A stretch of 64,000 nucleotides of DNA, from NCBI RefSeq assembly GCF_002571385.2, contig NW_019217896.1:616546-680545 (forward strand). The letters are read 5' to 3'. The notes beneath the pieces are model-generated. The model saw nothing but the letters and a program-made list of their open reading frames with translations, was not told where the DNA came from and ran no database searches. Positions 4,601 to 62,204 of the stretch are shown piece by piece (within the stretch, counting starts at the first letter, position 1; every line of letters begins with the position of its first letter). Position numbers and translations under genes: made by a program. The stretch is from Stylophora pistillata. Its lineage: Eukaryota.

Positions 4601-7600
4601 AGCAAGCTCAAGAAAGAAGGTTCCCTAAAATGTGATTGCTTCTGGTTGTTAAAGGGGCAATGTTGTCTTTCTCTTTAGAGTTAATTAACTAATATTTCTT
4701 CGATAGTTATCACTGAGTGGTGATGAAAAACAAGATCAGAAGGCAGAAGTGTCCTTTGCACCAGAACCTGCTGTGGTAGAAGGAGGTTCTGGAAAACAAG
4801 AATCAGATGTCAAGTCAAGAATTCCTGAAGGAGCAGAGGCTACTACTGTCCTTGTAGGAACACTCGATGAACTCCAATATCCAGTTGTAGCATTTGTTCG
4901 TCTCGCCAAAGGGTGCCCCTTGAATATCACAGAAGTGTCCATTCCTGTCAGGTTCATGTTTGTGTTGTTGGGTCCAAGCTCGGAGGAAGAGTCTTACTAC
5001 GAAATTGGTCGGTCCGTGGCCACCCTAATGTCAGATCAGGTCTGTTATATTCAGATTCATTTAATGAGCTGAATTATGTATTTTGATTGACTGTTACCTA
5101 TGATCTACTATTAGAGGACAGACGTAGAGATGATGTCACCAGTTACTCCTTAACTTTCAAGATCTGATCGTTAATTCTCCCCTCTAGCTGCTACACATTT
5201 CCTTGTAAAGGAAAAGAGAATTTGGTGTTAGATCAAGATAACAATTTCTACCTGATAAGCTTGAGTATTCTCGTTACCTATTTTTCTGGATAATGTAGGG
5301 ATATTATAGAGAGAAGTTTCGTGTTAATCACCTATGTTGCCATGGGTCTGTACAGTAATGGCTTACAGAAAACGTCAAAATGTAGCAAGAACATCAGTGA
5401 CACACGGGGCTGGGCTTCTTGTGCCACCTTTTTGTTCTCATCACATTCTAAGGGGTNNNNNNNNNNNNNNNNNNNNNNNNNNNNNNNNNNNNNNNNNNNN
5501 NNNNNNNNNNNNNNNNNNNNNNNNNNNNNNNNNNNNNNNNNNTATTATCGTAACGGTGGCCAATTTACCATTTCAACTTTGTTGATATATTCAAATTATT
5601 TCGTTACCCCCACCGACGCAGCCCCAAACGGTTTCTTTAGAAACTATCAGCCTTTATTTATTGGTAGCCTGAGTTAGTTTTTACAATAACTATGTCACAA
5701 TGAATACATATATATATTCTTGTAAGAAGTTTAAAAATTTTTTCCAGGTGTAAAACGGACAACAAGAACCTGCATTTCATAAGTAGGCAGTCAAATTTGA
5801 TCGTATACTTTTTTAAAACGCCAAAATTCTCCGTAAGATCGTTTAGGGCTAGAGAATGCTTGTCGCAAATATTGCTTGCCAATTTAGGAAGAAGTGTTTT
5901 TGTGTTCTTGAACACGTTAGTGCAGATGGCGGTGAGCGAAACCAGTTTTGTTCTTGTGTAATTAAACCTAGTTTAAGCTGCAGTCATATTTTGCTTTCAA
6001 AAGTTTCACGAACTTTAACACTGTATATAATGGAAAAAGGGTAGATATAGAGAGAGGATCTACACAGTTAGAAGTAATTGTTTTGTGTGGTTTTCATGTT
6101 TCAGGCATTTCATGACATTGCATATCGCGCAGATTCTCGGGAAGACCTCCTGTCAGCTATCAATTGTTTCTTGGATGACACGGTTGTATTGCCGCCTGGA
6201 GAGTGGGATCGTAACGTGTTGCTTCCAATCCTCATTGCTCAAAGCAGAGCTATGGCACGAAGAAGAAAGATGGCTAAAGCTGGTAAGGACAAATTTGGTG
6301 GATGTTTGTGTTTGATTCAGTGTGACTAAAAGATCTCGACGACAGGCGAAAATTTTGTGAACAGACAATGTTTAGGCCGGTAAGGTAATACTCTCAACGA
6401 AGTGTCTACTAGTTACAGGGTGGCTGGGATTTTGAAGTTCTTGACGATAAGATGTTAGGATACTAGAGCGCATTTTTTTAAAGTGTCGTAATACCAAAAC
6501 TATTGTAATTACAAGAGCCAATCAGAACAAGGTAAATTATAACAAGAACCAGTAGGAATTTAAATTAAGAACAAGCCAACCGCTTGATTAATTGAGAAAG
6601 TGGCACGAGGTTTCTTGAATAATCACAGAGCGGTACAAGGCAACACAAAGCGCGGGAAAACGCGAATGGTGAGCTCGTGGTAGGTTTTAGTTTGAATCTG
6701 ATTGGTTGAGAAGTTGGCGCGAGTTTTTTGGACCAATCACAGAGCGAAGTAAGGCGACAACAACGCAATCCCGAATTATTTTCGACTCTGAATTAAAAAT
6801 TGCTCTGTATCGTCGTTTACAGCTCTCGCTGCAGTTGCTGAGGAACAAGAAATAGACCCATTGGAAAGAACAGGTTCATTCTGTGGTGGCCTTGTGGAAG
6901 ACATCAAAAGACGAGCTAAAGTTTACCTCAGTGACTTCAAAGATGGACTTAATTTGCAGTGTCTCCTAACGTCGATATTCCTTTATTTTTCTGTCTTTGC
7001 TCTTTTGGACAAGAAAACTACCTCAGTGACTTCAAAGATGGACTTAATTTGCAGTGTCTCCTAACGTCGATATTCCTTTATTTTTCTGTCTTTGCTCCCA
7101 ATGTTGCGTTCGGTAGTCTTTTGGACAAGAAAACTGATGGATGGCTTGGTGTGTCAGAAGTAATTCTAGCTACTTGCATGTGTGGAATTTTGTTTGGTCT
7201 TCTTGCGGGACAGCCACTGATTATTATTGGCGCTACAGGGCCTGTGTTGGTTTTTGAGCAGACTATTTATGAGGCAAGTGTACGGCAACATCTGTTTACT
7301 TTCTCTATTCTGTCTTCATTTCGTGATCCACGGATTGACAAAGAAAAAAACCAAAAAAAAAAAAAACCGAGAGCAGGACGGAAATTTCAAATTCTCTTTC
7401 CATTAAAATGAGACACGACTGCCTATTCCATGCGCCATCGGTAGCCGCTTATGGTAAAAGTTATGGGAACCCCTGCATCATATGCTTGGATGGAGAATGG
7501 AATGGTGAATTGAGTAACGAGTTTGTTGTTTTTATTTTACATCTTTTCTTTAGTTCTGTAATGTTTACAACGTGGAATTTCTTCCATGGCGCTGTTGGAT

Positions 7601-10600
7601 TGGCTTCTGGGTCATGATGATCCTGTTTGGGGTGGTTGCTTTAGAAGGCTGTTTTCTTGTACGATATTTCACCAGGTTTACAGAAGAAATCTTCGCTTGT
7701 CTGATCTCTGCTATCTTCGTCTATGAGGCCATACACTTTTTAGAAGTGGTAAGATATTTACAGAAATTTAGTTTTACTTATTATAACTGATTTTTTAGTA
7801 TTAAGTTTACGTGTGTAATGAACTAAATTATTCGCTGTAGGTTTTCAAGAAAAATCCTTTGCAGAAAACGTACACAGAATCACCTAAATCTCCTGAATAT
7901 GAAGTGAAGGGGCAACCAAACACTGCTCTTCTTTCCACCATCATGGTTCTGGGAACATTCTTCGTTGCCTTTTACCTGCGGAAGTTCAGAACAAGCTACT
8001 TTTTTGGGAAAAAGGTTTGTAGTGATCACAACTAGCGTGTGGTGTATATTCCCTCTCAAAGTTGAAAATATGTAAGGCACCTAGGCCCGGTTATGTTATT
8101 AAAAAAAACCGCGTTCTAATCTATCTTGAATTTAGCTCAATCTTTAATCTGAACATTCAGTTTTGTAAACACTGTCTAGAGGACCGAAAGCTAGCTGTGG
8201 AAGAACATTTATTTAATGAAAAAACCTCCTATAGAGAATGCGTAAGGCCCAGTGCTTGCGTAAAACTGCAATTTGGGTTAGACCTCGTGTAAATAACCGT
8301 ACTTTAATGTTATGCAGCCTTGTTATACCTTTTAATTACTCAAGCTCGATTCTGAAACTCAGGTTGCTATATGTTAGCCAGATTCTGTCGATTGAAATTT
8401 AGCTTAGAATCCGTAAGTTTCAAGTTTAAAATTTGAGTGGAGGTTGACTTGGTATATAACTCCCATAACCATATAGTAAATTCTTGCTTCCAGCCGTTAT
8501 ATGTTTTCTTTGGGATGAGTGGAGAGAATTTTGCGTTCCCTCAAGACAAAACCGTCCAGCTGTGTGGTTTCTTTCTCCTCGCAACCTTTTTTCGAGAGCA
8601 ATACTCAATTGAGTGTCGAAGGTTGTTGGTTTTACTTTTCTTTGCTTTGTAATTGGCTTAGAAAACTCCCGCTATTCGGCTCTCAAACAATCAAATTCAA
8701 ATATAAGACTAATCGCGTCTTGATCAAAACCGTCTTCCCGCGCTTCATGCAGTTCACTCGTTTTAAACGTGAGTCGTCATTGGCCCCTTGTAAGATATCG
8801 ATTGTTTTGATTGGCCGTTGCGTATTCTTTGCCTTTGGTGTCCATTACTCAATCGGAGAAGCTTCTGGATTTAAATGGAGCTAAGCACAGGATGTCGGGA
8901 TCCTTAGAGCTCAATAAGACTCGACTTTTTTTTCTCAGGCCAGAAGACTTGTAAGCGACTTTGGCATAGTCATAGCCATGGCTTGTATGTTACTCGTGGA
9001 TGTCTTTCTTTACGATAAAGTCGTCACGCAGAAGATTACCATTGGTGATCCTACGAAAAGAGGTTTTTTACCAACAAGATACACAGAGAGAGGCTGGTTT
9101 ATTAACCCTGGAGGGATGAAAAGACCCATGGAACCTGGCTGGATTTTTGCGGCCATAATTCCAGCCTTGTTCGTGGGAATCTTGCTGTTTATGGAAACTG
9201 AACTGACGGGAGTGCTCTTGAACAAGAAAGAAAACAAACTTTTAAAGGGCGCCGGCTTTAATTTGGACCTAATCGTTATGGGATGTCTGTCGTTTGTTTG
9301 CTCCATGATGGGGCTGCCATGGATGTGCGCGGCGACTGTCCGGTCGGTGTCACACTTAAATGCGCTGTCTATCTGGAGTACGTCTCAAGCTCCTGGCGTT
9401 AAACCACATCTGGTCGAGGTCAAAGAACAGAGGGTTACAAACATTGCCATACACGTGTTGACAGGTCAGTTCAATGGGTTTTGTGAACGAATTTTAACAG
9501 CGTGTCGAAAGTTATGGGGTCACGTTGGTTTTCTCTACTTTGCTCTGTGATGGGGTTTAGAGAATTTGCGCCACGTTTTAACCAATCAGATGTAGTACCA
9601 GCGACTTGGGTAAAGGGGTAAACATCTTAAGAAGCTGTAGTGCTGCGTCGGTTGAGGCTGGGGTTCTACCAAATGATTTAGTTTAATCAACTGAGTCGGT
9701 AATGTAAATGGGCTTCCGTAAAGGGTTTCTAAAGCTGTCGTTTCGAGCCTTAGCCCTTTGTCAGAGCCAGCTCTTCGTTAGCTCTTCGAACGGTTGCGAT
9801 TGAAACTTCAAACTGCCTACATACACACACAAAAAAGAAATAAAAATTACCAAAATATGAAAAATAAAATAGGATTTGCGGTGCACATTCCACCATGTGG
9901 CTCTTCTTGTCCACTGTTTCCAATTCGAATTGGAATTTAGAATGTTGATAAACCAAAGAATTTTGTATTGGCGACTTGGTTATGACTGTTTTCCCGCGCG
10001 ACGAGCATATGGCTCGTTTTTTCTTCGAGTTTTCATTGGCTCCTAGTGATTCTTCCTTTGTTCTGATTGGCTGTTATGACAAATTACGACACGTGGCGTG
10101 GTTTTTCTTTAAGTTTTCATTGGCCCCTTGAAATTTTTCCTTTGTTCTGATTGGTTGTAACGGACGTTTTGGTCGATTGCAGGGGTTTCCATTCTACTTG
10201 CTCCAGCTCTTCATCGTATCCCCGTCGCAGTCATGTTTGGTGTACTGTTCTATCTTGGTGTTTGTTCCTTGTCTGGTATTCAGCTCGTCGACAGAATAAT
10301 TATGATGTTTATGCCCCCAAAGTATCACCCAGATGTGCAATATGTTAGAAAGGTAAGCTGCTACAGACACAGCGATCGAACACAGGACATGCGCAAGGGA
10401 ATTAATTTCGTTCAGCCGTGCGCCAATTTCCCGCGCAAAATTTCAAAGGAAAACATGAGAAACAATAGCTGTCACGCAAAATAAGCAATAGAAAATGGAA
10501 ACATGCATAGAAATCTGAAAAGGAAACAAAAAAATTACGGGTTCCCTCCTTATTTATCATTTTGTTTTGAGCTTTACCGAGAAAGCTTCGCGGTTTTCAA

Positions 10601-50690: not shown

Positions 50691-53149
50691 TTTCCGCAGC
50701 AGAATAATATATTGCCAGGGTTACAATTGAGTCCTTTCTTAACTCTATCACTAAGCCTGTGAAATTAAAAGTTATCAATGTCACAAGACCAGAAATGACC
50801 CATTCAAATGTGATTGCCTTGACGTCATTTCAAACTTGATGACCAGAATTCACAATTTAAGCAATGTAATGTACTTATTGATTGATAGTGTATGACAGAC
50901 AAGAAGATATTTGGCTGAATGTCATGATTAATAGAGAGGTGTGCAAATGAAAAGAGAATGCAAGCACTCTCATGGATCTCCTTTCTCAGGACACCCTTAT
51001 GACCATGGTAAGATTTCTCTGAACATAGCTACTCTTTTATAGGAGCCAGGTCATGAAATCTTTGAACTAGCCAATTGGCAGATAGAAATAACAGCTTAAT
51101 ATTGTGAATAAACCAAACAAAATACTGAAATACCCTATTTAAGGTGATAGGAAACGGTTTTTTAAGACACCTTCTGACTCAATAGTTTCAAAGTGCTCAA
51201 AAATCAACTTTCCCTGTTTGCAGTGAAACTAACTTCACACGTGCTGACCCTGCTGAAGATTGAAATAGTGGGTATGGCATGGCAATCACTATACTCTAAT
51301 AATATTAGGAGCATATTCCGCTTAATAGTTTTTGAGGATAGTCTCGGGAATTCTGCTAGAGATTTCTCTTTTTAAGGTAAGGCCTCACTTCTGAGTGAGT
51401 TTTAACGAAGGAAATCTAGCTGTTTCAAAATTATGATGCCACGACATTTACAGCTTGCCACTACATAATACTGTTTACAGAAAGAGTTCTATAAGTACAT
51501 GTTGAGTATTTAAAGTACTGAGGAAATTAGGCAAAAGTTTTATGGAGCCATTTCCATGATAAGAAAAGAAACTGATCCCATTAAGGTTGTATGCACAATG
51601 TTTAACATAAGAAATATAATACCAAGCAGTCACGATACGGTCGATTGTCAGTCACCCTCTTTAGAGGATGAAAGATAAATCATATCTTAATATTTCTAGG
51701 GAAAAAAACGTACGAAGCATCATTGATCTTAAACGAGTTTACTTTTCCTTTGCGGAATGGTGATAATAATGATTTCAAAAGGGAACTTAAGAAAAATCGT
51801 ATTTGAGACGCGGACAGAAGGCGGAAGTTAAAAGTTCTCATTCCTGATGCTTAATAGACCTCTATGATCAGCGCAATATGTGGCTAAAAGTACGCCAGAG
51901 TCAGTTTTGTTATTCTTCCAATTACCTTCCGTAAACGACTTTACCATGATCTTCGATACTACAGCAAATTGGCTATCAGATTCCAAATGGGAGATTGCGT
52001 GTTGCATATATACCCGTTGAACCTCCCAGACAGTCTTCTTATCTGTTCAAGTTGTAACTTTAACATACTTTCAAGAATTCCTTAATGAAGGGTTATGCAT
52101 TCGTCCATGCAAAAGAAGTAGGCAGTTAGGCCTTTAACCTCCCGATTTCCTTCCTTCGAACTACATCAGTGTGATTCTTTGGTACCTGGGAACATAAGCT
52201 TGAGAGGTGCTTCGAGGGGACAGTGAGATGCCCAACAATGGGTAAGCGGTAGTTTGACAAAATGTTGCGAGTACTTCCAAAGTTTTCGTTACTCCTGCTT
52301 CCAGTAACCTGTGAACCTTATTGGCTCATACGTCACATTTTCGCAAAGCGGGAAAACCAGACGAGCGGGGTAAAGCCTTCAAGCACCAAAAGACTCAATC
52401 AACACACGAAGTAAAGGAAAAGGAGATTACATTTTTTCAAGGAAACTTCGACAAAGTTGGTTTTCCCGAAAATTATTGCAGCCGCGGAAAGCCTCAATGA
52501 GTTGATCGAGAAATATCTACAGCAACAGAGAGAGCATCAATAGCAAGCAAATATAGCGTCAATAATAGGATTTCGCCTTCACTGATTTAGTTAATATGTA
52601 GTAACTAAGTGTTCGAATTAGTCATCCGGTAAAATTCTTATCAAATAAAGCTATTAAATAAAGTTATCCTTTTAATTATTAATGCGAACACTCTCAGGGT
52701 GTGCCCTTCCTAGTGCCCGCCTTCGAATAATTGCCGCCAACACCCCTTCCTACCATATCTGGTTTGTGCTATATTTCAGTTCAGGGAGTCGCATGGTGGT
52801 TCTTAATAAAGAAAAGAAGAAAGGATGCTCGTCAGTAGTGTGACCGCGATGAAGAAAAAAACGTATCTGAAGTTCCAAGGATTAAGAAAATTTGTAGAGT
52901 ACCCAGCCCGTATCCAGAAGAGGGTGATAAATATCATTCTTTACTATGAGATCGATGAAGGATTAAAGCTATCAGACAGTGCCAGCGCCAGCGCTGTGTC
53001 ATGAGGAAACAGATGCACTAGCACGTTAAGATTCCCTTGTCTTCTCATCACCAAGTACCAAGGGCACCACATCGGTACCTTCGCCACCAGTAACTATAGT
53101 GTAGAGAGTAGGATTCCAAACAACATTTACGATCTTGCAGGCAATGGAG

Positions 53150-53192: not shown

Positions 53193-55766
53193 TTCGTTAT
53201 TGCATCTTCTGTGTCTTGCGTGACTGGTGTTGTGTGACTCACTTTACTTCTCTACCATTATGGGACACACGAAAGTTCTTCGATATGGAGAAGAACGCAA
53301 TTAGAGTACAGCCTGCTTTCCAATCAGACTGAAAGAAGCTTTTATTCATGTAACAATGAATAATGATTGAAATTAACACATCACTGGCGATTGGAAAAAC
53401 TTGTCTTTCATTTTATTGTCTATTTTAGTGTAAGGGTGGAATAAAACTGAAGCGGTATGCACAGAGGTCCACACGAAGCGAGGAGTACTTATCCTCTTGT
53501 GCGTGACCCACCCTTCACGCGTGCCTCGCGTTTGCCTCGCTGTTCCCTTCCCTCCTCTGTAAAACAAAGAAGAAATGATTGCTGTTCTTATCTCGACTCA
53601 GGGATTCTGCTTTTACTACAATATTACCAATTCAACAACCGATGGATGCTATATTGATTTTCCGATAGTTCCGCGGGACCAAATGCAAATATATGAAATA
53701 CAATATGGAGTTAATTTACAGATTTAATGCTCTATGCATCATCAATTTTGTAAAGGTTGTATTTGAAAAACTTAAAGTTATTGAACACTGTCAGGAGCCC
53801 ACCTAACACTGTAGATTAACTCCATATTGTATTTTATATATCTGCATTTGGTGCCGCGGACTACCGGAAAATCAATATAGCATCCGTCGGTTGTTGAATT
53901 GCTCTATTTTTGTCACTTTTTTGTTGGAAGTTTGATGATGTTTTCAGGGAGATATCACCTGTTATCACTCCTGTGAGTGGGTAAGGTCAAAACAAGCATA
54001 TTTGACTGAATTAAGACACGACCGTGATGTGATATTCCAGAGAGAAACGTAACCTTGCGGCAATTTTCCTCGAATGCGCCTGAAACTTGATTGTTGTTTA
54101 GCTAGTAACTTGGCCGCTTACCCACGAGGGTTAAAGACTTCATGTCTACAACTGTATCGATTCGAACCGAAGCGCTAGCTTTGTTACAACAGTACAGCCA
54201 ATCACCAAATGGAATAAAGGCTGTTTGTGGTGCGCGCGTTTTGGGGTGCCATTCGGGATTTCGTGTTTCCGGCTAGGTTACAAAGTTGTTTTTCAAAATG
54301 GCGGCCTCTGCAGTCGACTTTGTGACAAAGAAAAGAATCTCCGAAGGTTTGGTTTCTCTCTGGAAACTCAAAACTAGGCAAGAATTCAACGTTTTTATAT
54401 GCTTTTCAACAGAGGATATAAAAATCTCAGGGTTTCCGGAGTACACTTGTCCCACATATCAGTTAATTAACACTGGACCTTGCAGGTGTACGACTAGTGC
54501 AGGATTGGTGCAGGTCTCCTCCTTCAACAGGTTCAAGTAAATTACCAAAAGATAGCGAGCCCAACTTTAAATTTCTTCACAGCCGTCACAACTTAAAAAA
54601 ATCAGCTATTTTGAGCCACCTTTATCGCGCGTGATGATGGAAATTGTAAAAACGCGAGTGTAGTACGTGGTTTAGAGGCGTAAATGGTGTTTTGAAAGTT
54701 TGCCGAATTGCACGAGCCGTAGGAAAGTGAATTTGAAAACTTTTCAAAACATCACGTGTGAATATCACGGAAACTATGAGCGATTCACACGATCATTTGT
54801 CCTTTATGTTATCAACAAAATCAGTTCTTAGGGCAACTTTCACGGTCTGGGTGGGCATAGCTCCAATTCTAACACACGTCAACGGTTTGGGAAAAGGTTC
54901 TGTTCTCTTAGAATTGGTTATATTTGATACAAGGGTTCTAGTACAATAACCGAGAAACTCCGCACCCACCCTTCCCCTGATCCAACATTAACCGTAGCTT
55001 GTTATTCTGTTGACTCGCTGGCTTTTGGGTCACGAGAGGGGTAGGTGCGCAATTGCCCAAATAGTGACATTGATCCAATACCAGGGGCGGACCTAGGGGA
55101 GGGGCACGGGAGGACCGGACCCTCCCCCCTCAGTTTGGGTAAAAAATAAACGCAGAGGGAAGAACATCCGGCAGGTAAACACACAGAAAAATAAAACGAC
55201 CCCCCCCCTCAGCTCAAGGTCTGGATCCGTCAATGGATGGAATAACTGTGACAGACAAACCAGTCTTTACGGATTTCGTAGCATTTCACAAAGTAGCATA
55301 TCTTTTTTTATATCCTTGAAAGCTTAAATTTCTAGAGTATGCGGAACGGAAATCCAGTTTTAGACTCTGCAGCCTATTTGTGCATTTGAAGTTGAATAAT
55401 CAAGAGCGAGATGTTTTGCTGAGTTTGTTATAATCTCTGCCATGGCGGATCGCTATAAAAGAAAATATGAATCAAAATATGTTTAGAAATGAGGTTTGTA
55501 CGTTCGGCTAATCCTAATGAGTTAGTCAATGCTGTTACTCAGCAATCGGCTCTTTTCCTTGTAATAAATTGAAATTGCTGAACTGGACACGATTTACCTA
55601 AGTGCACAGCTTTTATAAAAAAAAAAAAACATCTTTGGCCTAGGTTCTGGAGGATTCTACTTAGTACACCAGGTCGCTTCACTCAGGTTTCGTGTGTACT
55701 AAATTGCTACAGTTTCGGCTTAATTTTGATGGTCACTTTCTTTGTGCTTCATTTGAACCCTCATCC

Positions 55767-56637
55767 TTAAAGGTCTCCGGCCTTAAACTTCTCGGCGATG
55801 AATTTCCGTACCATTCCCTGAATCTCATCTTCCTCTGGGCATTCCAATTCGCTTAGCAGCCCCTTGATGTCTTGGACAGCCTGCGTAGTCCAGCCTTTAT
55901 GCATCTCTAAAGACGATTTCATCAACATGTAGATATCCAAAGGTAACAACACGGCGCCAACAATTCCTCCAGCTAAATTGGCCACGCGCACTCCCGCCAA
56001 ACCCCCGGTTCGCGCGAAGCCACCAGCAGCAGCAAACGCCCCAGCCCCTATTGAAGCCGTGGACGAGAAGCCCCAGAAAAACCTGGCGGAGAAATCTACT
56101 TTCTCCTCGGTTGAAGTCGTGAACTCCCTTTGAGCTAGATTGTGAAGAAACGCAGAACCCTCGTTTTGTATTCCTCTCAGATCGGAGATGAACTTCTCGA
56201 GGTTGTCCACCTTTCCTTTCAGTTGCGTGCAGGCTCCCCTGTCCTCGTCAATGGTTTCCTTAACTTTCTTCAGTCCTAACTTTGCGAGGGTTATGTAGAT
56301 TGCTTTGGAAACAGACATCCTCAAGACTCCTGCGACTATGATTACGGCGCCAGCGAGGGAGACCACAAGCCCGGCTCCAAAAGTAAAGAGCGTGGTAATC
56401 AGGCCCACTATCGCTAGGATTCCTCCTAGGGTACTCGCAGAAGCACCTGCTACGGTCGATTTACTGACATTCATGTGGTGTTCGAGTAATTTGGACGCTA
56501 GTTCCTCTAGTTTTTCCATAGTATGTTTCCTCCTTGGTATCCAGCGCCTAAAAGCGTTAATCAAGTCTTCTTCTAACCGGCCCAACACTCGGTAACTCGT
56601 CGTGACTCGGACATAATCTTTGTTTGACAACAAATTT
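55767..56637 (-). CDS. Apolipoprotein-L-like domain exon 2
   Basis: HHMNVSKSTVAGASASTLGGILAIVGLITTLFTFGAG...LLPLDIYMLMKSSLEMHKG...LECPEE; clearly paralogous to 58402-59374 (shared WIP.RKHT.EKL.ELA, IDEDR.ACTQL, VDF.ARFF). Confidence 0.85.
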
Positions 56638-59600
56638 CTGCAAGACAAATATTCAATGAAGTAAAAAATTATCTTTGAAGGTCTAGTCCATGAAAAAAAA
56701 TTTGGAAGCATAATTATGTGATAGGCTGTCGCTATTTCGCATCAAATTATAATGAGTTTCAGGTTTTAGTTTCACTGAAAGAATATAATCTCTTGGTTGT
56801 ACCGACTGCAAGCTCACGCGTGACTTATCCTCCAAACATTAGAATTCTGGTTGATGTTTCAAAAAATCATTCACCCAACCATCACTATAATTATATTCAA
56901 GCTTTACAACTGAAGTTTATAAAATTACTTAGAGATTGGTTGCTTTCATTGCTACTTTTATCATAAATCTGCCCGCATTCCACCTCTGCAAGAAAATGTA
57001 TTTGGGTTAAACGACTTCCCTGAAATCTGATCCGGACTTTCGTTTGTGCAAAGGACTGTAGGATCGCCAGGTGCGAAACATTGCAAAAAGAAAACGCACT
57101 CAGAATACATGGCGAAATTTGTTTCAAGGTCCGAAGAAAACAGAAAAAATTTTGAAGAAAGATCTTCGATTCTGGGGTAAAACAATTTTAGGAAACAAAA
57201 CTAAAAGACGAATTTCTTTTCACTGAACTAAGATGAAAGTTATCAATAATAGTGATATTTCTAAATCAACTTGAGTAGGTTTCTTCATTGTAACTCATTA
57301 TCAACGCAGAAACGACTAAACGTTGATAAAGCTGAACCTCCCAGGAAAGGTCGAAGTCTATCTCTCCTAAACCTTTCGGTACATAATCTAGCAAACAGGT
57401 GCTGAGATTGTAAAAGTTGTCATCGGGAAATTTTTTAACACAACATTCTCTTGAGTAGTTTATGAGAAATTATAACCCACCCATTAATTTTGGCGCGATT
57501 TTAGTGGTTACTTTACGTCACCTGGTGCGAAATCACAGGACAGCTATCACGCAATAAACCCCGTCCGCGTCGATATTTGTCCTCCGATTTTTTCCGTGAA
57601 AAAGAAGCATAGTCAACACAAGAGTTTCAACTTTTCCGTTCTCCTATTTACATGGAAGAAAACCAAACTGGTTTTTTTTTCAGTCCTCACAGTGAAAATT
57701 GAAATGATTTGATTTTTTCCTGAGACTGATAAACATTTCTTTGTAGTCAAGTTTTTGAACAGCACGTCGGAAAATGTGAACCAAAAGCGCCAAGTTTTCG
57801 AGTTTTTGATCTAAGGGGCGTTATGAGAATTAATTTCAAATGACAGCTTGTCAAGGTTTGGTCCAATCACATTAAAAAAAAGTAATTTAAACCAATCATA
57901 TGTACTTAATTGCTTGCATCAATCACGCGCATTCGCCATCAAATCACCACTGGCTTTTTTATACTGTGTTTACCCGCAGTTTAATTGCGATGTGAAAATT
58001 AATGAGAGGGTTACAAAATAAATAAACCCCGTTCTGGATTGCTGGTATGTCGGCTGATAATGTCCTTGGCTGAGAGATTGTCCTCAAAATTTCATATTTG
58101 CCCTCGAAGCTTCGCTTCTCGGCCAAATATTTATTTTTCGGACCATCTCTCAGCCGCAGACATTATCAGCCGACATAACAGCCGCCCGAAGGGGGTTTAT
58201 TTACTAAATATACTGCAAATATACTGCAGTGAGTATTACGAATCAGATTTTGTGAGATAAAGTGTTAAGACCCAGCCTCACTGAGGCTGGGTCTTAACAC
58301 TTAAGACCCAGTCGTTAAGTCGTTAAGTCGTTAAGACCCAGTGATTAATTGGTTAAAGACCCAGCCTCTTTAACCAATTAATCACTGTTCGCACCACTCA
58401 CATCTTTTGGTTTTTCTGTGGCGTTTTCGGCTTTGCTCTTGTCATTATTATAGGCCTCAGTTTGGCCTCAGTAAACTTTTCTTCGATAAACCTCTCCACC
58501 ATGAGTTGAATTTCTTCCTCCTCTGGGCATTCTAACTCACTTAAGATCTGCCTGATGTCTTCCACCGCCTTGGAAGTCGAACCTCTTTTGAGCTCTACTG
58601 ACGACTTCACTAGCAATACGATGTCCAGAGGTAACACTGCCGCGCTTACTGCTGAACCGGCCACATGTGCAACAGGTACTCCCGCCAATGCCACGCTCCC
58701 CACCAAACCTCTCGTCGTGGTAGCGTACGCTGAGGCCGAGATTGAAGCCGCGGACAAGAAAATCCGGAAGAACCTGGCGCCGAAATCTACTCTCTCTCCG
58801 GGGGAAGTCGTGGGTTCAGAAGGGGTTAGATGGTGAAGGAATGTAAAACCACTACCTTCTAATTCTCCTCTCAACTGAGCATCGTTGTGAAGAGGTTTCA
58901 GAAACTCTGCTAGAGTGGAGATGAAGTTCTTGAGAGCTTCCAACTTTTCTTGCAGTTGCGTGCAAGCTTCCCTGTCCTCATCAATGGCCTCTTGAACCTC
59001 TTTCAATCCTAATTTTGTGAGAATTAGCTCAGTTACCTTGGAACCTGACATCACCAGACCTCCCGCGCCTCCAATTCCGGCGCCAACGAGTGAGATCGCA
59101 ATCCCGTCTCCAAGAGTGAAAGGTGCAACGATGAGGCCCGCTATCGATAGGATCCCTCCTACGGTACCCATAGACGCCCCTGTGATGGTTGATATGTTAA
59201 CATTTGTGTGATGTTTGTTTAAATTTGTCGCAAGCTCTTGCAGTTTCTCCCTGGTATGTTTTCTCTTTGGTATCCATTCGATAAAAGTCTTGTTCAGGTC
59301 TTCTCGTAACTGGCGCAATTGCTTGAATTTTTGAGTGATTTGGTTCACGACGTATGAAGTTGACAGTTCCGGATCTAAAATGATAAAATGATAAAAGAAT
59401 TATCTAAGATGATAGAAGGGTTAATACATGGTGGTAAAATTTTGTCTCATTAAAAGCTGCTTTGTAATCTTAGTACATCAAACTGAAAAACTGAGAAAAA
59501 GCTTCTTACAAACTTTTGGTTTTTTACATCATGCTTTCATAGAAGAAAATGGTTAAAACGCTATTAACATCAGCTCAGTGTACCAAACTACAAAATAAAT

Positions 59601-61177
59601 ATATATCCTCTTTGAGAATGGGAAGGATACAATGACACATAACATCAAAAGCCAAAGGAATTAACAAATATTTAAAGGTGCAGACTGTGATAAGAAATAA
59701 ACACTAAAATTTGATAAGAAATTTCCAAATTCACTTGCTTTGCAAGTGATTCAGCCCTGATACCTTTTGCTCCATCTTGAAGGTCTTGTCTTAGATACTC
59801 CACTTCTTGGGCTGTAGTTTTTACTTCTCCTCCGAGCTGATCTCTGTTGTCTTGGGTTTCATCTTGAAGCTCTTGTCTTAAGCACTGCACTTCTAAGGCT
59901 GAGGTCTTTACTCTTACTCCACTCTGATCTCTATCGCCTTGGGCTTCATCTTGAAGCTCCTGTCTTAAGCACTGCACTTCTTGGGCTGTTGTTTTTTCTT
60001 CTCCTCTAAGCTGATCTCTCGTGCTTTGGGCTTCATCTTGAAGCTCTTGTCTTAAGCATTGCACCTCCTGGGTTGCAGTTTTTACTTCCCCTCCAAGTTG
60101 ATCTCTGATGTCTTGGGCTTCATCTTGAAGTTCCTTTCTTAAGCACTGCACCTCTTGGGCTGTAGTTTTTATTTCCCCTCCAAGGTGATCTCTGATCTCT
60201 TGGGCTTCATCTTGAAGTTCCTTTCTTAAGCACTGCACCTCTTGGGCTGTAGTTTTTAATTCCCCTCCAAGCTGATCTCTGCTGTCCTGGGCCTCGGCTT
60301 GAGGTTCCTGTCTTAAGCTCTGCGCTTCTTGGGTTGCAGTTTTTACTTCCCCTCCAAGGTGATCTTTAATGCTTTGGGCCACATCTTGAAGTTCCTGCCT
60401 TAAGCACTGCACTTCTTGGGCTGTAGATTTTACTTCCTCTCCAAGATAATCTTTGATACCTTGGGCTTCATCTTGAAGCTCTTGTCTTAAGCGCTGCACC
60501 CCTTGGGCCGTAGTTTTTATTGAAGAGTTCATCGTTGTCATACATTCCTTTACTTCCATATCACTCTGGTACCAAATGCGCAATTCCCCCTCATCATGTT
60601 TCTTGTGTTTGTCAGTAAGGGGATCTTTCAAAAGTGTACCAATAGCCTTCCGCCATTCTGTTTTCTTTACAGGGTTGACTTGACCCGCAATTCTTACCAG
60701 AGCCTCGCTGATTTCTTTCCAGTGTACTAAAAAATCATCATCTGATACTTCCATTTTCTCATTCACATGACCATATATTGAATTATGGTAGAATTTAATT
60801 CTTGCTAAATCTGCCTCTAAGCTTTGGTCTGTGGGTAAAGGTAAAGAATCCCAACCTTTGGCTGGAGGGGTGAGGCTGCAAATTGTTCTCAGCAACCGAA
60901 AGAGAAGAGTTATATCAAAGTCTGTTGACTTTCCATACACCCCTGGGGATGGGTACAAACACTCCCATTGTGGTTTGGTGAGCTTTGCAGCCTTGAGTAG
61001 CTTCTTTGTAGCTGGGTTCTTCAGGATTGCTGGAAGATTACTCGGTGGACATTTGTTGTCAAAAACCTCCCTCAATAGCACAGTACCTCCACCTATTAAA
61101 AGCCGAGCCATCCGTTGAAAATTATCTCGCCCTTTTGAAGGACATAGCACAGCGTCTGGTCTAAGAGCAGTGGCCAT
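55767..61177 (-). CDS. Predicted 3-exon fusion gene: HEPN_DZIP3-like domain + 29-aa repeat helical stalk + two apolipoprotein-L domains (~1085 aa)
   Basis: Exons 61177-59764, 59374-58402, 56637-55767. Intron 1: donor AAG|GTATCA and acceptor TTTTATCATTTTAG|AT, both phase 1. Intron 2: donor AT|GTGAGT and acceptor TTTGTCTTGCAG|A, both phase 2. Total 3258 nt, in frame. Neither APOL ORF begins with an ATG (track starts are GTG, or an ATG in intron-like sequence). Confidence 0.7.
58016..58210. mobile_element. Short MITE in intron
   Basis: AAATAAACCCC...GGGGTTTATTT inverted termini. Confidence 0.65.
58261..58387. repeat. Two perfect hairpins built from a shared TTAAGACCCAG motif
   Basis: 20-bp stem with 1-nt loop at 58261-58301; 21-bp stem with 7-nt loop at 58339-58387. 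Confidence 0.95.
58402..59374 (-). CDS. Apolipoprotein-L-like domain exon 1
   Basis: HHTNVNISTITGASMGTVGGILSIAGLIVAPFTLG..ISLVGAGIGGAGG and C-terminal LPLDIVLLVKSSVEL..GS.SKAV.DIR match APOL-family hallmark segments. Confidence 0.85.
59764..60520 (-). repeat. Coding tandem repeat, 87-bp unit, ~9 copies
   Basis: Consensus KTTAQEVQCLRQELQDEAQDIRDQLGGEV. Confidence 0.95.
59764..61177 (-). CDS. Exon encoding DZIP3/hRUL138-like HEPN domain followed by ~9 tandem 29-aa repeats
   Basis: NFQRMARLLIGGGT..LREVFD, QWECLYP, FDITLLFRLLRTICSL, GWDSLP..D.SLEADLARIKFYHNSIYGH are typical of the HEPN_DZIP3 N-terminal module of cnidarian NLR/TPR-type genes. ATG in AAAATGGCC context; 5'UTR acceptor TTTCACAG| at 61244. 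Confidence 0.85.
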
Positions 61178-62204
61178 TTTTAATAAATTAAATTATTGCA
61201 GGCTGGGGTTAGAATCAAGTTCTTTCTTAACTCTTTGACTAAACCTGTGAAACAGAACAACGAAATTAAAGGTTATTAATGTCACAAGACCAGAAATGGC
61301 TCTTATCAATTTTGCTGTCTTACTTTATTTTTGAAGCTGCAGACAACCAGAATTCCCAATTTACCATGAAAATTAAATGTAGTTGATGACTGAGGAAGTG
61401 AGCAAGACAAGAAGAAAAAGATTGGCTGAATGTTATGAATTACCGGCTTGGCGCAGATGTGCAAACGAAAAGAGAACATTGGCACTCTCATAGATCTCCT
61501 TTCTGAATGGGACGCTCTCAGGACCAAGATAAGATTCCTCTGAACATGGCATCTGCTCCTTTCTAGGAGCCTGGTTATAAAATCTTTGAACGGGCCAATT
61601 GGAACATAACAATAACAGCTTAAAGTTGAAAATAAACAAAAAAATATATCCCATTTAAAAAAAAAGTATGGGTGGTTGAGTTAGATAACACTAAATAGGA
61701 CTGTTATGGAATAGAGCAGAAAATCTGCAGTGCTTCTGTAGCATAGGCTTGCCTTTTCTAGAGAAAGACTTTCGTTCTACAAATCTGATTTTTGGGCTTC
61801 GAAAAATAACACCAAAATCTTAAAGTCGAGGGTTTTCCAGTTTTTCACTCCCGCATGACAATGACCCAATAGATGCAAATGTAAGGTGTACCTGTTTGTT
61901 GCAGAATTCTTAGTATTAATTAATATTTAACCTTATAGGGAGGTTCGTCTAGGATAATTTAGCAGATATTTTCAAGTCTGTTATTTGCAGCCACTGTAAT
62001 GTACTCCACCCTTCTTTCATTCCCTTCGAAAAAAAAAATATATAAATATATAGAGAGAGGGGTTAAACTTGACTATCCGTAAAACAGTGCTCGATACATA
62101 TAGTAGAGCGAGTATAACGTGTGATAGGCAGAAAAAAAAAATCAATCAACTATATTTCATCCCTACAGACCTGTTTCGTGGTTGCCCACACATCAGGGGA
62201 TTTA

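Follow-up and report, generated by a model that had tools for sequence, protein, structure and literature searches.

Apolipoprotein L (ApoL; APOL in humans) proteins are membrane permeabilisers; human APOL1 is a channel former and APOL3 is bactericidal. HEPN domains, the second family of concern here, commonly act as dimers. They are ribonucleases (RNases) or RNA binders that require an Rx4-6H motif (PMC3710099), and the DZIP3-type HEPN (HEPN_DZIP3) stands N-terminally in many invertebrate immune proteins (PMC3710099, PMC10236652, PMC8195603). Many NLR-like proteins with an N-terminal DZIP3-like HEPN are reported in the Tara coral genome paper (PMC10236652), and the TRADD-N study gives TRADD-N, macro and PARP as partners of HEPN_DZIP3 in cnidarians (PMC8195603); ApoL goes unmentioned as a partner of this domain in PMC3710099, PMC8195603 and PMC10236652. 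In marine invertebrates, corals included, innate immunity diversifies as a small repertoire of effector and adaptor domains is reshuffled. Here we describe a locus of the coral Stylophora pistillata that joins the two families. It lies on the minus strand at positions 55767-61177 of a 64,000-nucleotide (nt) stretch of contig NW_019217896.1 (positions 616,546 to 680,545), which we call the window and whose numbering is used below. Three open reading frames (ORFs) there make up, with high confidence, one spliced HEPN-repeat-ApoL-a-ApoL-b gene with three coding exons. The predicted protein would carry, in order, HEPN_DZIP3, about nine 29-amino-acid (aa) helical repeats, an a-type ApoL domain, a basic linker and a b-type ApoL domain. 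We favour, with moderate confidence, the reading that this is a young, lineage-specific chimeric gene of S. pistillata and that it encodes a cytosolic, membrane-active effector in immunity or cell death.

Compared with the described families, the locus takes one part from each of two coral groups. The coral ApoL3-like proteins (P0272 of S. pistillata and proteins of Oculina, Desmophyllum, Porites, Montipora and Acropora) are like exon 2 in their hairpin regions and C-terminal helix. They have a short acidic leader exon of their own and an acidic tail closed by a stop codon, whereas the fusion has the HEPN-repeat module in front and a frameshifted tail that is spliced onward. The coral HEPN-repeat proteins P0084 (329 aa) and P0001, together with P0081, share with the fusion the N-terminal module (57-67% identity), the repeat type and weak Apolipoprotein/ApoLp-III-like profile matches. 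P0084, named 'E3 ubiquitin-protein ligase DZIP3-like' in S. pistillata, is stand-alone, and P0081 of Oculina patagonica continues into TRADD-like_N. These relatives carry a Ser/Gln/Gly-rich tail or TRADD-N, all keep the motif Arg, and none has an ApoL domain. The human APOL family shares the Pfam ApoL domain and the order of elements, in which a hydrophobic hairpin is followed by a second hydrophobic region and then by a C-terminal amphipathic helix; it is distant from the fusion, which has two ApoL units behind HEPN and no secretion signal. Finally, proteins with several ApoL domains or with ApoL fusions resemble the locus in that ApoL is repeated, or is C-terminal behind a variable N-terminal domain, but none contains HEPN_DZIP3 and the long ones are about 30% or less identical to exon 2.

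The three ORFs occupy 59672-61177 (501 aa), 58398-59348 (316 aa) and 55767-56711 (314 aa). An earlier note on this DNA had proposed that they are spliced into a single 3258-nt frame with matching phases (1/1 and 2/2), and both the sites and the sequence are as it stated. Read from the sequence, the first donor and acceptor are AAG/GTATCA ... TTTTAG/AT at 59764^59374 (phase 1, codon GAT for Asp), and the second are AAGAT/GTGAGT ... TTGCAG/A at 58402^56637 (phase 2, codon ATA for Ile). Exons of 1414, 973 and 871 nt add up to the 3258-nt frame, which has 1085 codons plus a stop and is intact in the assembly. All features are on the minus strand. Coding exon 1 (59764-61177) starts with the ATG at 61177 and has 471 full codons plus one base, covering HEPN_DZIP3 and the helical repeats. 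Intron 1 (59375-59763, 389 nt, GT..AG) is defined by an RNA joint. Coding exon 2 (58402-59374) carries the a-type ApoL domain, as judged by homology to a-type genes, and intron 2 (56638-58401, 1764 nt, GTGAGT..CAG) is spanned by an RNA joint in three runs. Coding exon 3 (55767-56637) carries the b-type ApoL domain and the stop codon at 55767-55769. The 3' untranslated region (UTR) covers at least 55617-55766, where RNA contigs end, and one run's contig extends to 55500.

About half of the sampled 31-mers of 55500-61400 were present in 14 polyA RNA runs from four studies, a share close to that of the exons in this stretch, and each of the 14 listed polyA runs shows robust expression. RNA contigs of three runs (X1, X3 and X7, from three studies) and one raw-read run were placed on the stretch. 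RNA mapping had been suggested in the earlier note as a check on the two junctions, and both joints were recovered from polyA contigs of the three independent studies, 59374^59764 skipping 389 nt and 56637^58402 skipping 1764 nt. They read CT..AC on the plus strand and hence GT..AG in the direction of the gene; the shorter side of a joint is covered by 30-215 nt, and the depth equals that of the neighbouring exons. RNA depth was zero in intron 1 and at 61213-61400, the 190 nt upstream of the start region, raw reads over the exons were one-stranded, and no exonic indel was present in the RNA contigs of any run. An assembly chimera was considered and rejected, because the RNA joints connect the exons independently of the assembly.

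One point stands against a single message. In the RNA contigs of the three studies both joints were never seen on one contig, only on overlapping short contigs, and one continuous mRNA is therefore inferred from that overlap. The locus might instead give separate messages, namely HEPN-repeat with or without ApoL-a, and ApoL-b alone, with the joints never on one molecule. Depth does climb from exon 1 to exon 3. Moreover, some contigs continue from exon 3 into intron 2 at a depth of 6-11, where exon 3 itself has 80-190, and a minor unspliced fraction therefore exists; the in-frame ATG at 56711 could start a 314-aa ApoL-b, and a message left unspliced at donor 2 would reach a stop one codon on, giving HEPN-repeat-ApoL-a. 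On the other hand, the joints are as deep as the exons while unspliced contigs amount to about 5-10% of that depth, and a 3' depth bias is normal in polyA libraries. Exon 2 has lost its leader exon and its original acceptor, has no ATG before codon 68, and is reached via joint 1 only. Separate messages are thus very unlikely in our judgement, and the single spliced gene is the model used below. A side observation concerns intron 2, where a high-copy repeat at about 57470-58257 reached an RNA contig depth of 400-1650 with many loose ends leading elsewhere; related copies are therefore abundantly transcribed from elsewhere in the genome.

Homology and domain searches were run exon by exon, not on the spliced protein. 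The three domain calls of the earlier note (HEPN_DZIP3, ApoL and ApoL) all scored above the Pfam gathering thresholds. HEPN_DZIP3 (PF18738; aa 45-193, 60599-61045) was matched with an E-value of 3.3e-41 and 140.9 bits against a gathering cut-off of 27, over profile positions 1-142 of 144. The AlphaFold modelling that had been proposed gave a confident HEPN core, with a predicted local distance difference test score (pLDDT) of about 78-91 over most of the length of this part; the model of ApoL-a is taken up below. The repeat stalk is present as a tandem repeat, with its unit now corrected to 87 nt (29 aa) in 8.8 copies at 59757-60519 (Tandem Repeats Finder, 82% matches among copies), and donor 1 lies within the last, degenerate unit. 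The 29-aa units have hydrophobic residues at a spacing of 3-4 and are very acidic and Gln-rich. AlphaFold predicted three very long helices over them (189-289, 296-412 and 428-470) with modest confidence (pLDDT 40-70). The repeats do no more than resemble exchangeable apolipoproteins (Apolipoprotein A1/A4/E, ApoLp-III), as the corresponding profiles remained below threshold (PF01442, 23.0 vs 90 bits; PF07464, 31.6 vs 36.3 bits). A Foldseek search with the exon-1 model gave no match at E <= 0.001, and sequence searches of the PDB gave no match. Exon 1 has neither a signal peptide nor a hydrophobic segment, and the 1085-aa protein should therefore be cytosolic.

The ApoL domain (PF05461, gathering score 25.9) was matched in the exon 2 ORF with an E-value of 2.7e-22 and 80.0 bits, and in the exon 3 ORF with an E-value of 2.5e-10 and 40.7 bits. 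By Kyte-Doolittle analysis, hydrophobic hairpin regions lie at aa 63-110 and 222-261 of exon 2 and at aa 60-118 and 212-243 of exon 3, with none in exon 1, and the conserved C-terminal 'LSELECPEE..' helix aligns in both ApoL exons. ApoL-a retains the conserved family core and its two hydrophobic hairpin regions, and it conforms to the Gly-rich first hairpin GAGIGGAGGLVMS of the coral ApoL3-like subfamily. As no in-frame ATG occurs in exon 2 before codon 68, exon 2 alone cannot encode an ApoL. ApoL-b belongs to a separate b-type lineage (53% identity and a synonymous divergence, dS, of 0.9 to exon 2); it has the usual b-type 14-residue gap, an added Arg in the first hairpin and a shortened tail. 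ApoL-a would be the likeliest working membrane-permeabilising unit. The HEPN-repeat module, which elsewhere in corals occurs alone or with TRADD-N or TPR, might add RNA binding or cleavage and perhaps self-association. An effector function of the fusion product, as suggested by these sequence features, is put forward tentatively, at slightly below even chances. The locus makes it practicable to test whether the ApoL proteins of corals act on membranes as immune effectors.

The steps that built the fusion are still legible in the DNA. ApoL genes occur in a-then-b pairs: at about 702.8 kb (a, broken) and 698.6 kb (b) on C113, in the window, and at 20.9 kb (a, which is P0272) and 16.1 kb (b, broken) on C148, where a further b'/a' pair is also located. 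A HEPN exon precedes only the window's pair among the three a/b pairs in the genome, and no ApoL was found within the examined flanks of HEPN-repeat paralogues on C366 and C148. Alignments with a-type genes at the nucleotide level break off at 59373, a single base into exon 2. The ancestral acceptor, as seen in P0272, is 14 codons farther upstream and follows a separate 14-codon leader exon; the fusion gene has neither that leader exon nor that acceptor. Homology to HEPN-repeat units ends at 59763, the first base of intron 1, and donor 1 therefore sits in a degenerate repeat unit. Exon 1 has the HEPN domain and the 29-aa repeats of the coral HEPN-repeat family and is missing the Ser/Gln/Gly-rich tail, because donor 1 falls inside a repeat unit. 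The HEPN block also reaches about 470 nt 5' of the ATG, an extent common to a broken HEPN copy at 49809-51124 (blastn, 60360-61648 vs 49843-51124, 80% block); the upstream part at 61178-61648, a putative promoter with a short 5'UTR, was duplicated along with the HEPN exon. Intron 1 is about 75% similar to sequences on C1166, C3506 and C2035, the one on C2035 being found downstream of a HEPN-repeat exon; judged from its sequence, intron 1 is filler carried from the flank of a HEPN-repeat gene.

Further changes separate the a-type tail from its relatives. An 11-nt tandem duplication, ACTGAGGCCAA at 58451-58472, was absent from both C148 a-copies in the DNA alignment. The resulting frameshift replaces the acidic tail of the ancestor by a basic linker and skips the ancestral stop, and the former codons GAC GTG AGT now read AT/GTGAGT, which is donor 2. 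The same frameshifted tail is found in P0271, an exon-level ORF of another sample that is 95% identical. Exon 3 uses an acceptor, TCTTGCAG/A, that the intact b-type copy on C113 has as well and that is therefore ancestral, and intron 2, the former a-b intergenic spacer, is collinear with the a-to-b intergenic spacer of C148. The fusion is young, given a dS of about 0.2 to the C148 pair and of 0.15-0.35 to the broken HEPN copy. In the first step, a HEPN-repeat gene was duplicated, and the copy, bringing about 470 nt of upstream sequence and a piece of its downstream flank, landed immediately before an a-type ApoL core. This removed the a-type leader exon and the original acceptor; the two parts are now joined from a donor within the last repeat unit to an acceptor newly formed at the breakpoint. 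In the second step, the 11-nt duplication shifted the a-type tail past its stop and made a donor of the coding GTGAGT, which splices to the acceptor that the adjacent b-type gene already had. Both steps took place within a tandem array of a/b ApoL gene pairs. The birth of a chimera is rarely visible in this way, with its steps (a duplicated donor module with its promoter, a breakpoint turned acceptor, a stop-terminated gene made into an internal exon by an 11-nt duplication, and an intergenic spacer turned intron) legible in one 6-kb stretch and backed by transcripts.

Relatives of the two modules are numerous. In the S. pistillata genome, matches number more than 150 for HEPN_DZIP3 and at least 31 for ApoL. 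The listings of public-protein relatives covered lengths up to about 824 aa, and a HMMER search covered all lengths. For exon 1, public relatives are at most 59% identical and are coral proteins of 300-470 aa in which repeats of this kind come after HEPN_DZIP3. Among annotated proteins, exon 2 is closest to the stand-alone 'Apolipoprotein L3 [Stylophora pistillata]' (P0272, 355 aa, 81-83% identical across the entire ApoL core), and all 120 listed relatives, from many scleractinian genera, are ApoL-only proteins of 277-523 aa. The b-type relatives of exon 3, in S. pistillata and Pocillopora, are likewise stand-alone and 70-76% identical. No match of about 100% to exon 1, 2 or 3 was found in the per-exon listings or the all-length search, with P0271 (95%) as the one exception. 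The all-length HMMER search with exon 2 returned 1419 matches among 1.84 billion representatives, and a Pfam scan of the 18 longest of the best 150 matches found no HEPN_DZIP3. Similarly, no protein with HEPN and ApoL was present among about 170 listed coral ApoL relatives, and three loci recovered in a Joint Genome Institute (JGI) metagenome scan were all stand-alone ApoL genes. A full-text literature search pairing HEPN with apolipoprotein L returned nothing relevant, nor did literature searches on ApoL of cnidarians or of Stylophora. The combination of HEPN_DZIP3 and ApoL thus appears to be undescribed, in line with the earlier note, which had called it a candidate new architecture.

That note had also held that APOL proteins are normally single-domain, which is too strong. 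By Pfam, P0161 has three ApoL domains and P0172, P0209 and P0177 have two each, and kinase-, helicase- and Ricin-B-lectin-ApoL proteins exist as well. P0240 (1198 aa) combines two protein-kinase domains with ApoL, P0213, a SecA_DEAD-like helicase protein of 3277 aa, carries ApoL at its N-terminus, and in P0137, a 2761-aa repeat protein, a 39-residue ApoL segment was matched 19 times. In S. pistillata itself, a single 454-aa frame on the minus strand of another contig (C50:49287-50651; L001:1174-2538) has an N-terminal Ricin-type beta-trefoil lectin and a C-terminal ApoL. The fusion is a new pairing within the well-known shuffling of invertebrate immune domains, and its tandem ApoL is not new in itself. 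It extends the list of partners known for the DZIP3-type HEPN module by ApoL, and, with HEPN-ApoL and lectin-ApoL in one genome, presents ApoL as a modular C-terminal effector in corals.

The catalytic motif of the HEPN domain differs between haplotypes. All 23 aligned relatives, and the broken paralogue, have R-N-x-x-Y-G-H, whereas the assembly reads H-N-S-I-Y-G-H at the Rx5H motif (60767-60787), with codon 131 being CAT for His (60787-60785), and so departs from the Rx4-6H motif of catalytically active members. In the X3 and X7 contigs codon 131 is CGT for Arg (C at 60786 on the plus strand), while X1 has His as in the assembly. The Arg-131 contigs are about 2.4% diverged and are most likely another haplotype of the fusion gene, as far as their sequence tells. 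An unplaced 1.9-kb contig (C3506:1-1917, L035) has the first 270 nt of the HEPN exon at 97% identity, with a different upstream region that includes filler like that of intron 1; the contig represents either a rearranged haplotype or one more recent paralogue. Of the three listed RNA variants in the overlap, this fragment shares just one, and its upstream region differs; C3506 is therefore unlikely to be the source of the Arg-131 transcripts. The HEPN domain of the sequenced His haplotype is probably RNase-dead, and other haplotypes would keep the Arg. It is possible to read the protein as a dual effector, with a HEPN RNase and an ApoL permeabiliser and with the Arg/His polymorphism held in natural Stylophora populations by balancing or diversifying selection, which we regard as improbable. 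If this reading were true, the polymorphism would be a natural on/off experiment, in a coral, on the coupling of RNA attack to membrane attack.

Several observations weigh against the favoured reading of a membrane-active effector. Among the 36 exonic RNA-vs-assembly differences listed, a partial sample from the best-supported 40 of 89, 29 are non-synonymous and 7 synonymous, which is close to the neutral ratio of about 3:1 and far from typical purifying selection. When changes were polarised by outgroup alignments, 10 were derived on the assembly haplotype, 5 on RNA haplotypes, and 13 were unresolved; the assembly-derived R131H, L152H and F182L (HEPN) and A219T, G221R and R233P (ApoL-a) fall at strongly conserved sites. 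The first hairpin of exon 3 is GAVIIVAGVLRMS, in which four conserved Gly, kept in all ten other a- and b-type sequences aligned, are replaced by Val or Ile. The AlphaFold model of ApoL-a is poor (pLDDT 51), too poor for a fold search. Neighbouring HEPN and ApoL copies are pseudogenes, and an orthologue of the same architecture was not found in another genus by exon-level relative searches or in metagenomes.

Most of these points would fit a functionless accident, that is, a transcribed and correctly spliced chimera without selection that drifts towards a pseudogene like its broken neighbours. The excess of non-synonymous differences, the ten derived changes of the reference haplotype, several of them at invariant or nearly invariant sites including the motif Arg, the loss of the four glycines in ApoL-b, the adjacent broken copies and the lack of an orthologous fusion in the searches all speak for it. 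The ratio of non-synonymous to synonymous rates (omega) against paralogues, 0.41-0.54 for ApoL-a, 0.5-0.67 for ApoL-b and 0.3-0.58 for the HEPN exon, counts on both sides: the values of 0.4-0.7 are in favour of the accident, and their lying below 1 is against it. On the other side, the 3258-nt frame is intact and stays open in every haplotype seen, with no exonic indel in contigs about 2-3% diverged from three studies, expression is robust in 14 of 14 listed polyA runs, and diversifying selection on immune effectors gives high non-synonymous diversity too. Taken together, these data suggest that the gene evolves under weak or diversifying constraint. We consider the accident unlikely on balance, albeit the most serious competitor of the effector reading; if the gene is neutral, it is still a clean example of chimeric-gene birth.

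The earlier note had gone further and proposed a sensor-effector in which an oligomerising HEPN stalk drives a tandem ApoL membrane-attack module. In a specific form of this mechanism, the stalk would sense RNA and switch on a tandem ApoL pore that works cooperatively. This would be consistent with the commonly dimeric state of HEPN domains, with the very long helices predicted for the repeats and their hydrophobic spacing of 3-4, and with the N-terminal place of HEPN_DZIP3 in many invertebrate immune proteins (PMC3710099, PMC10236652, PMC8195603). However, the assembly allele is without the motif Arg, ApoL-b is degenerate at the conserved hairpin glycines, and the double ApoL came from a frameshift into the next gene rather than from selection for tandem units. 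We judge this mechanism to be improbable as well, if marginally less so than the dual effector.

The window and related contigs also contain other copies of the two modules. A second HEPN-repeat copy, at 49809-50690 with 49180-49522 (both on the minus strand), is about 80% identical and has three in-frame stops in the HEPN domain. It keeps the motif Arg and has 2-3 repeat units, which are followed by short ORFs with TPR_12/TPR_1 matches, and it looks like a decayed HEPN-repeat-TPR gene. On the same contig as the window, 17-22 kb past its end, lies the a/b ApoL pair of C113 (697743-698618 and 702028-702825; L029 and L030), of which a is broken by frameshifts and stops and b is open, with a run of N near the acceptor. 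On C148, the b' ApoL copy is cut short by an adjoining stretch of about 2.1 kb (6426-8605, L025) in which several frames are open on either strand (ORFs of 674-721 aa); the stretch has no Pfam match and is probably a stop-free simple or tandem repeat.

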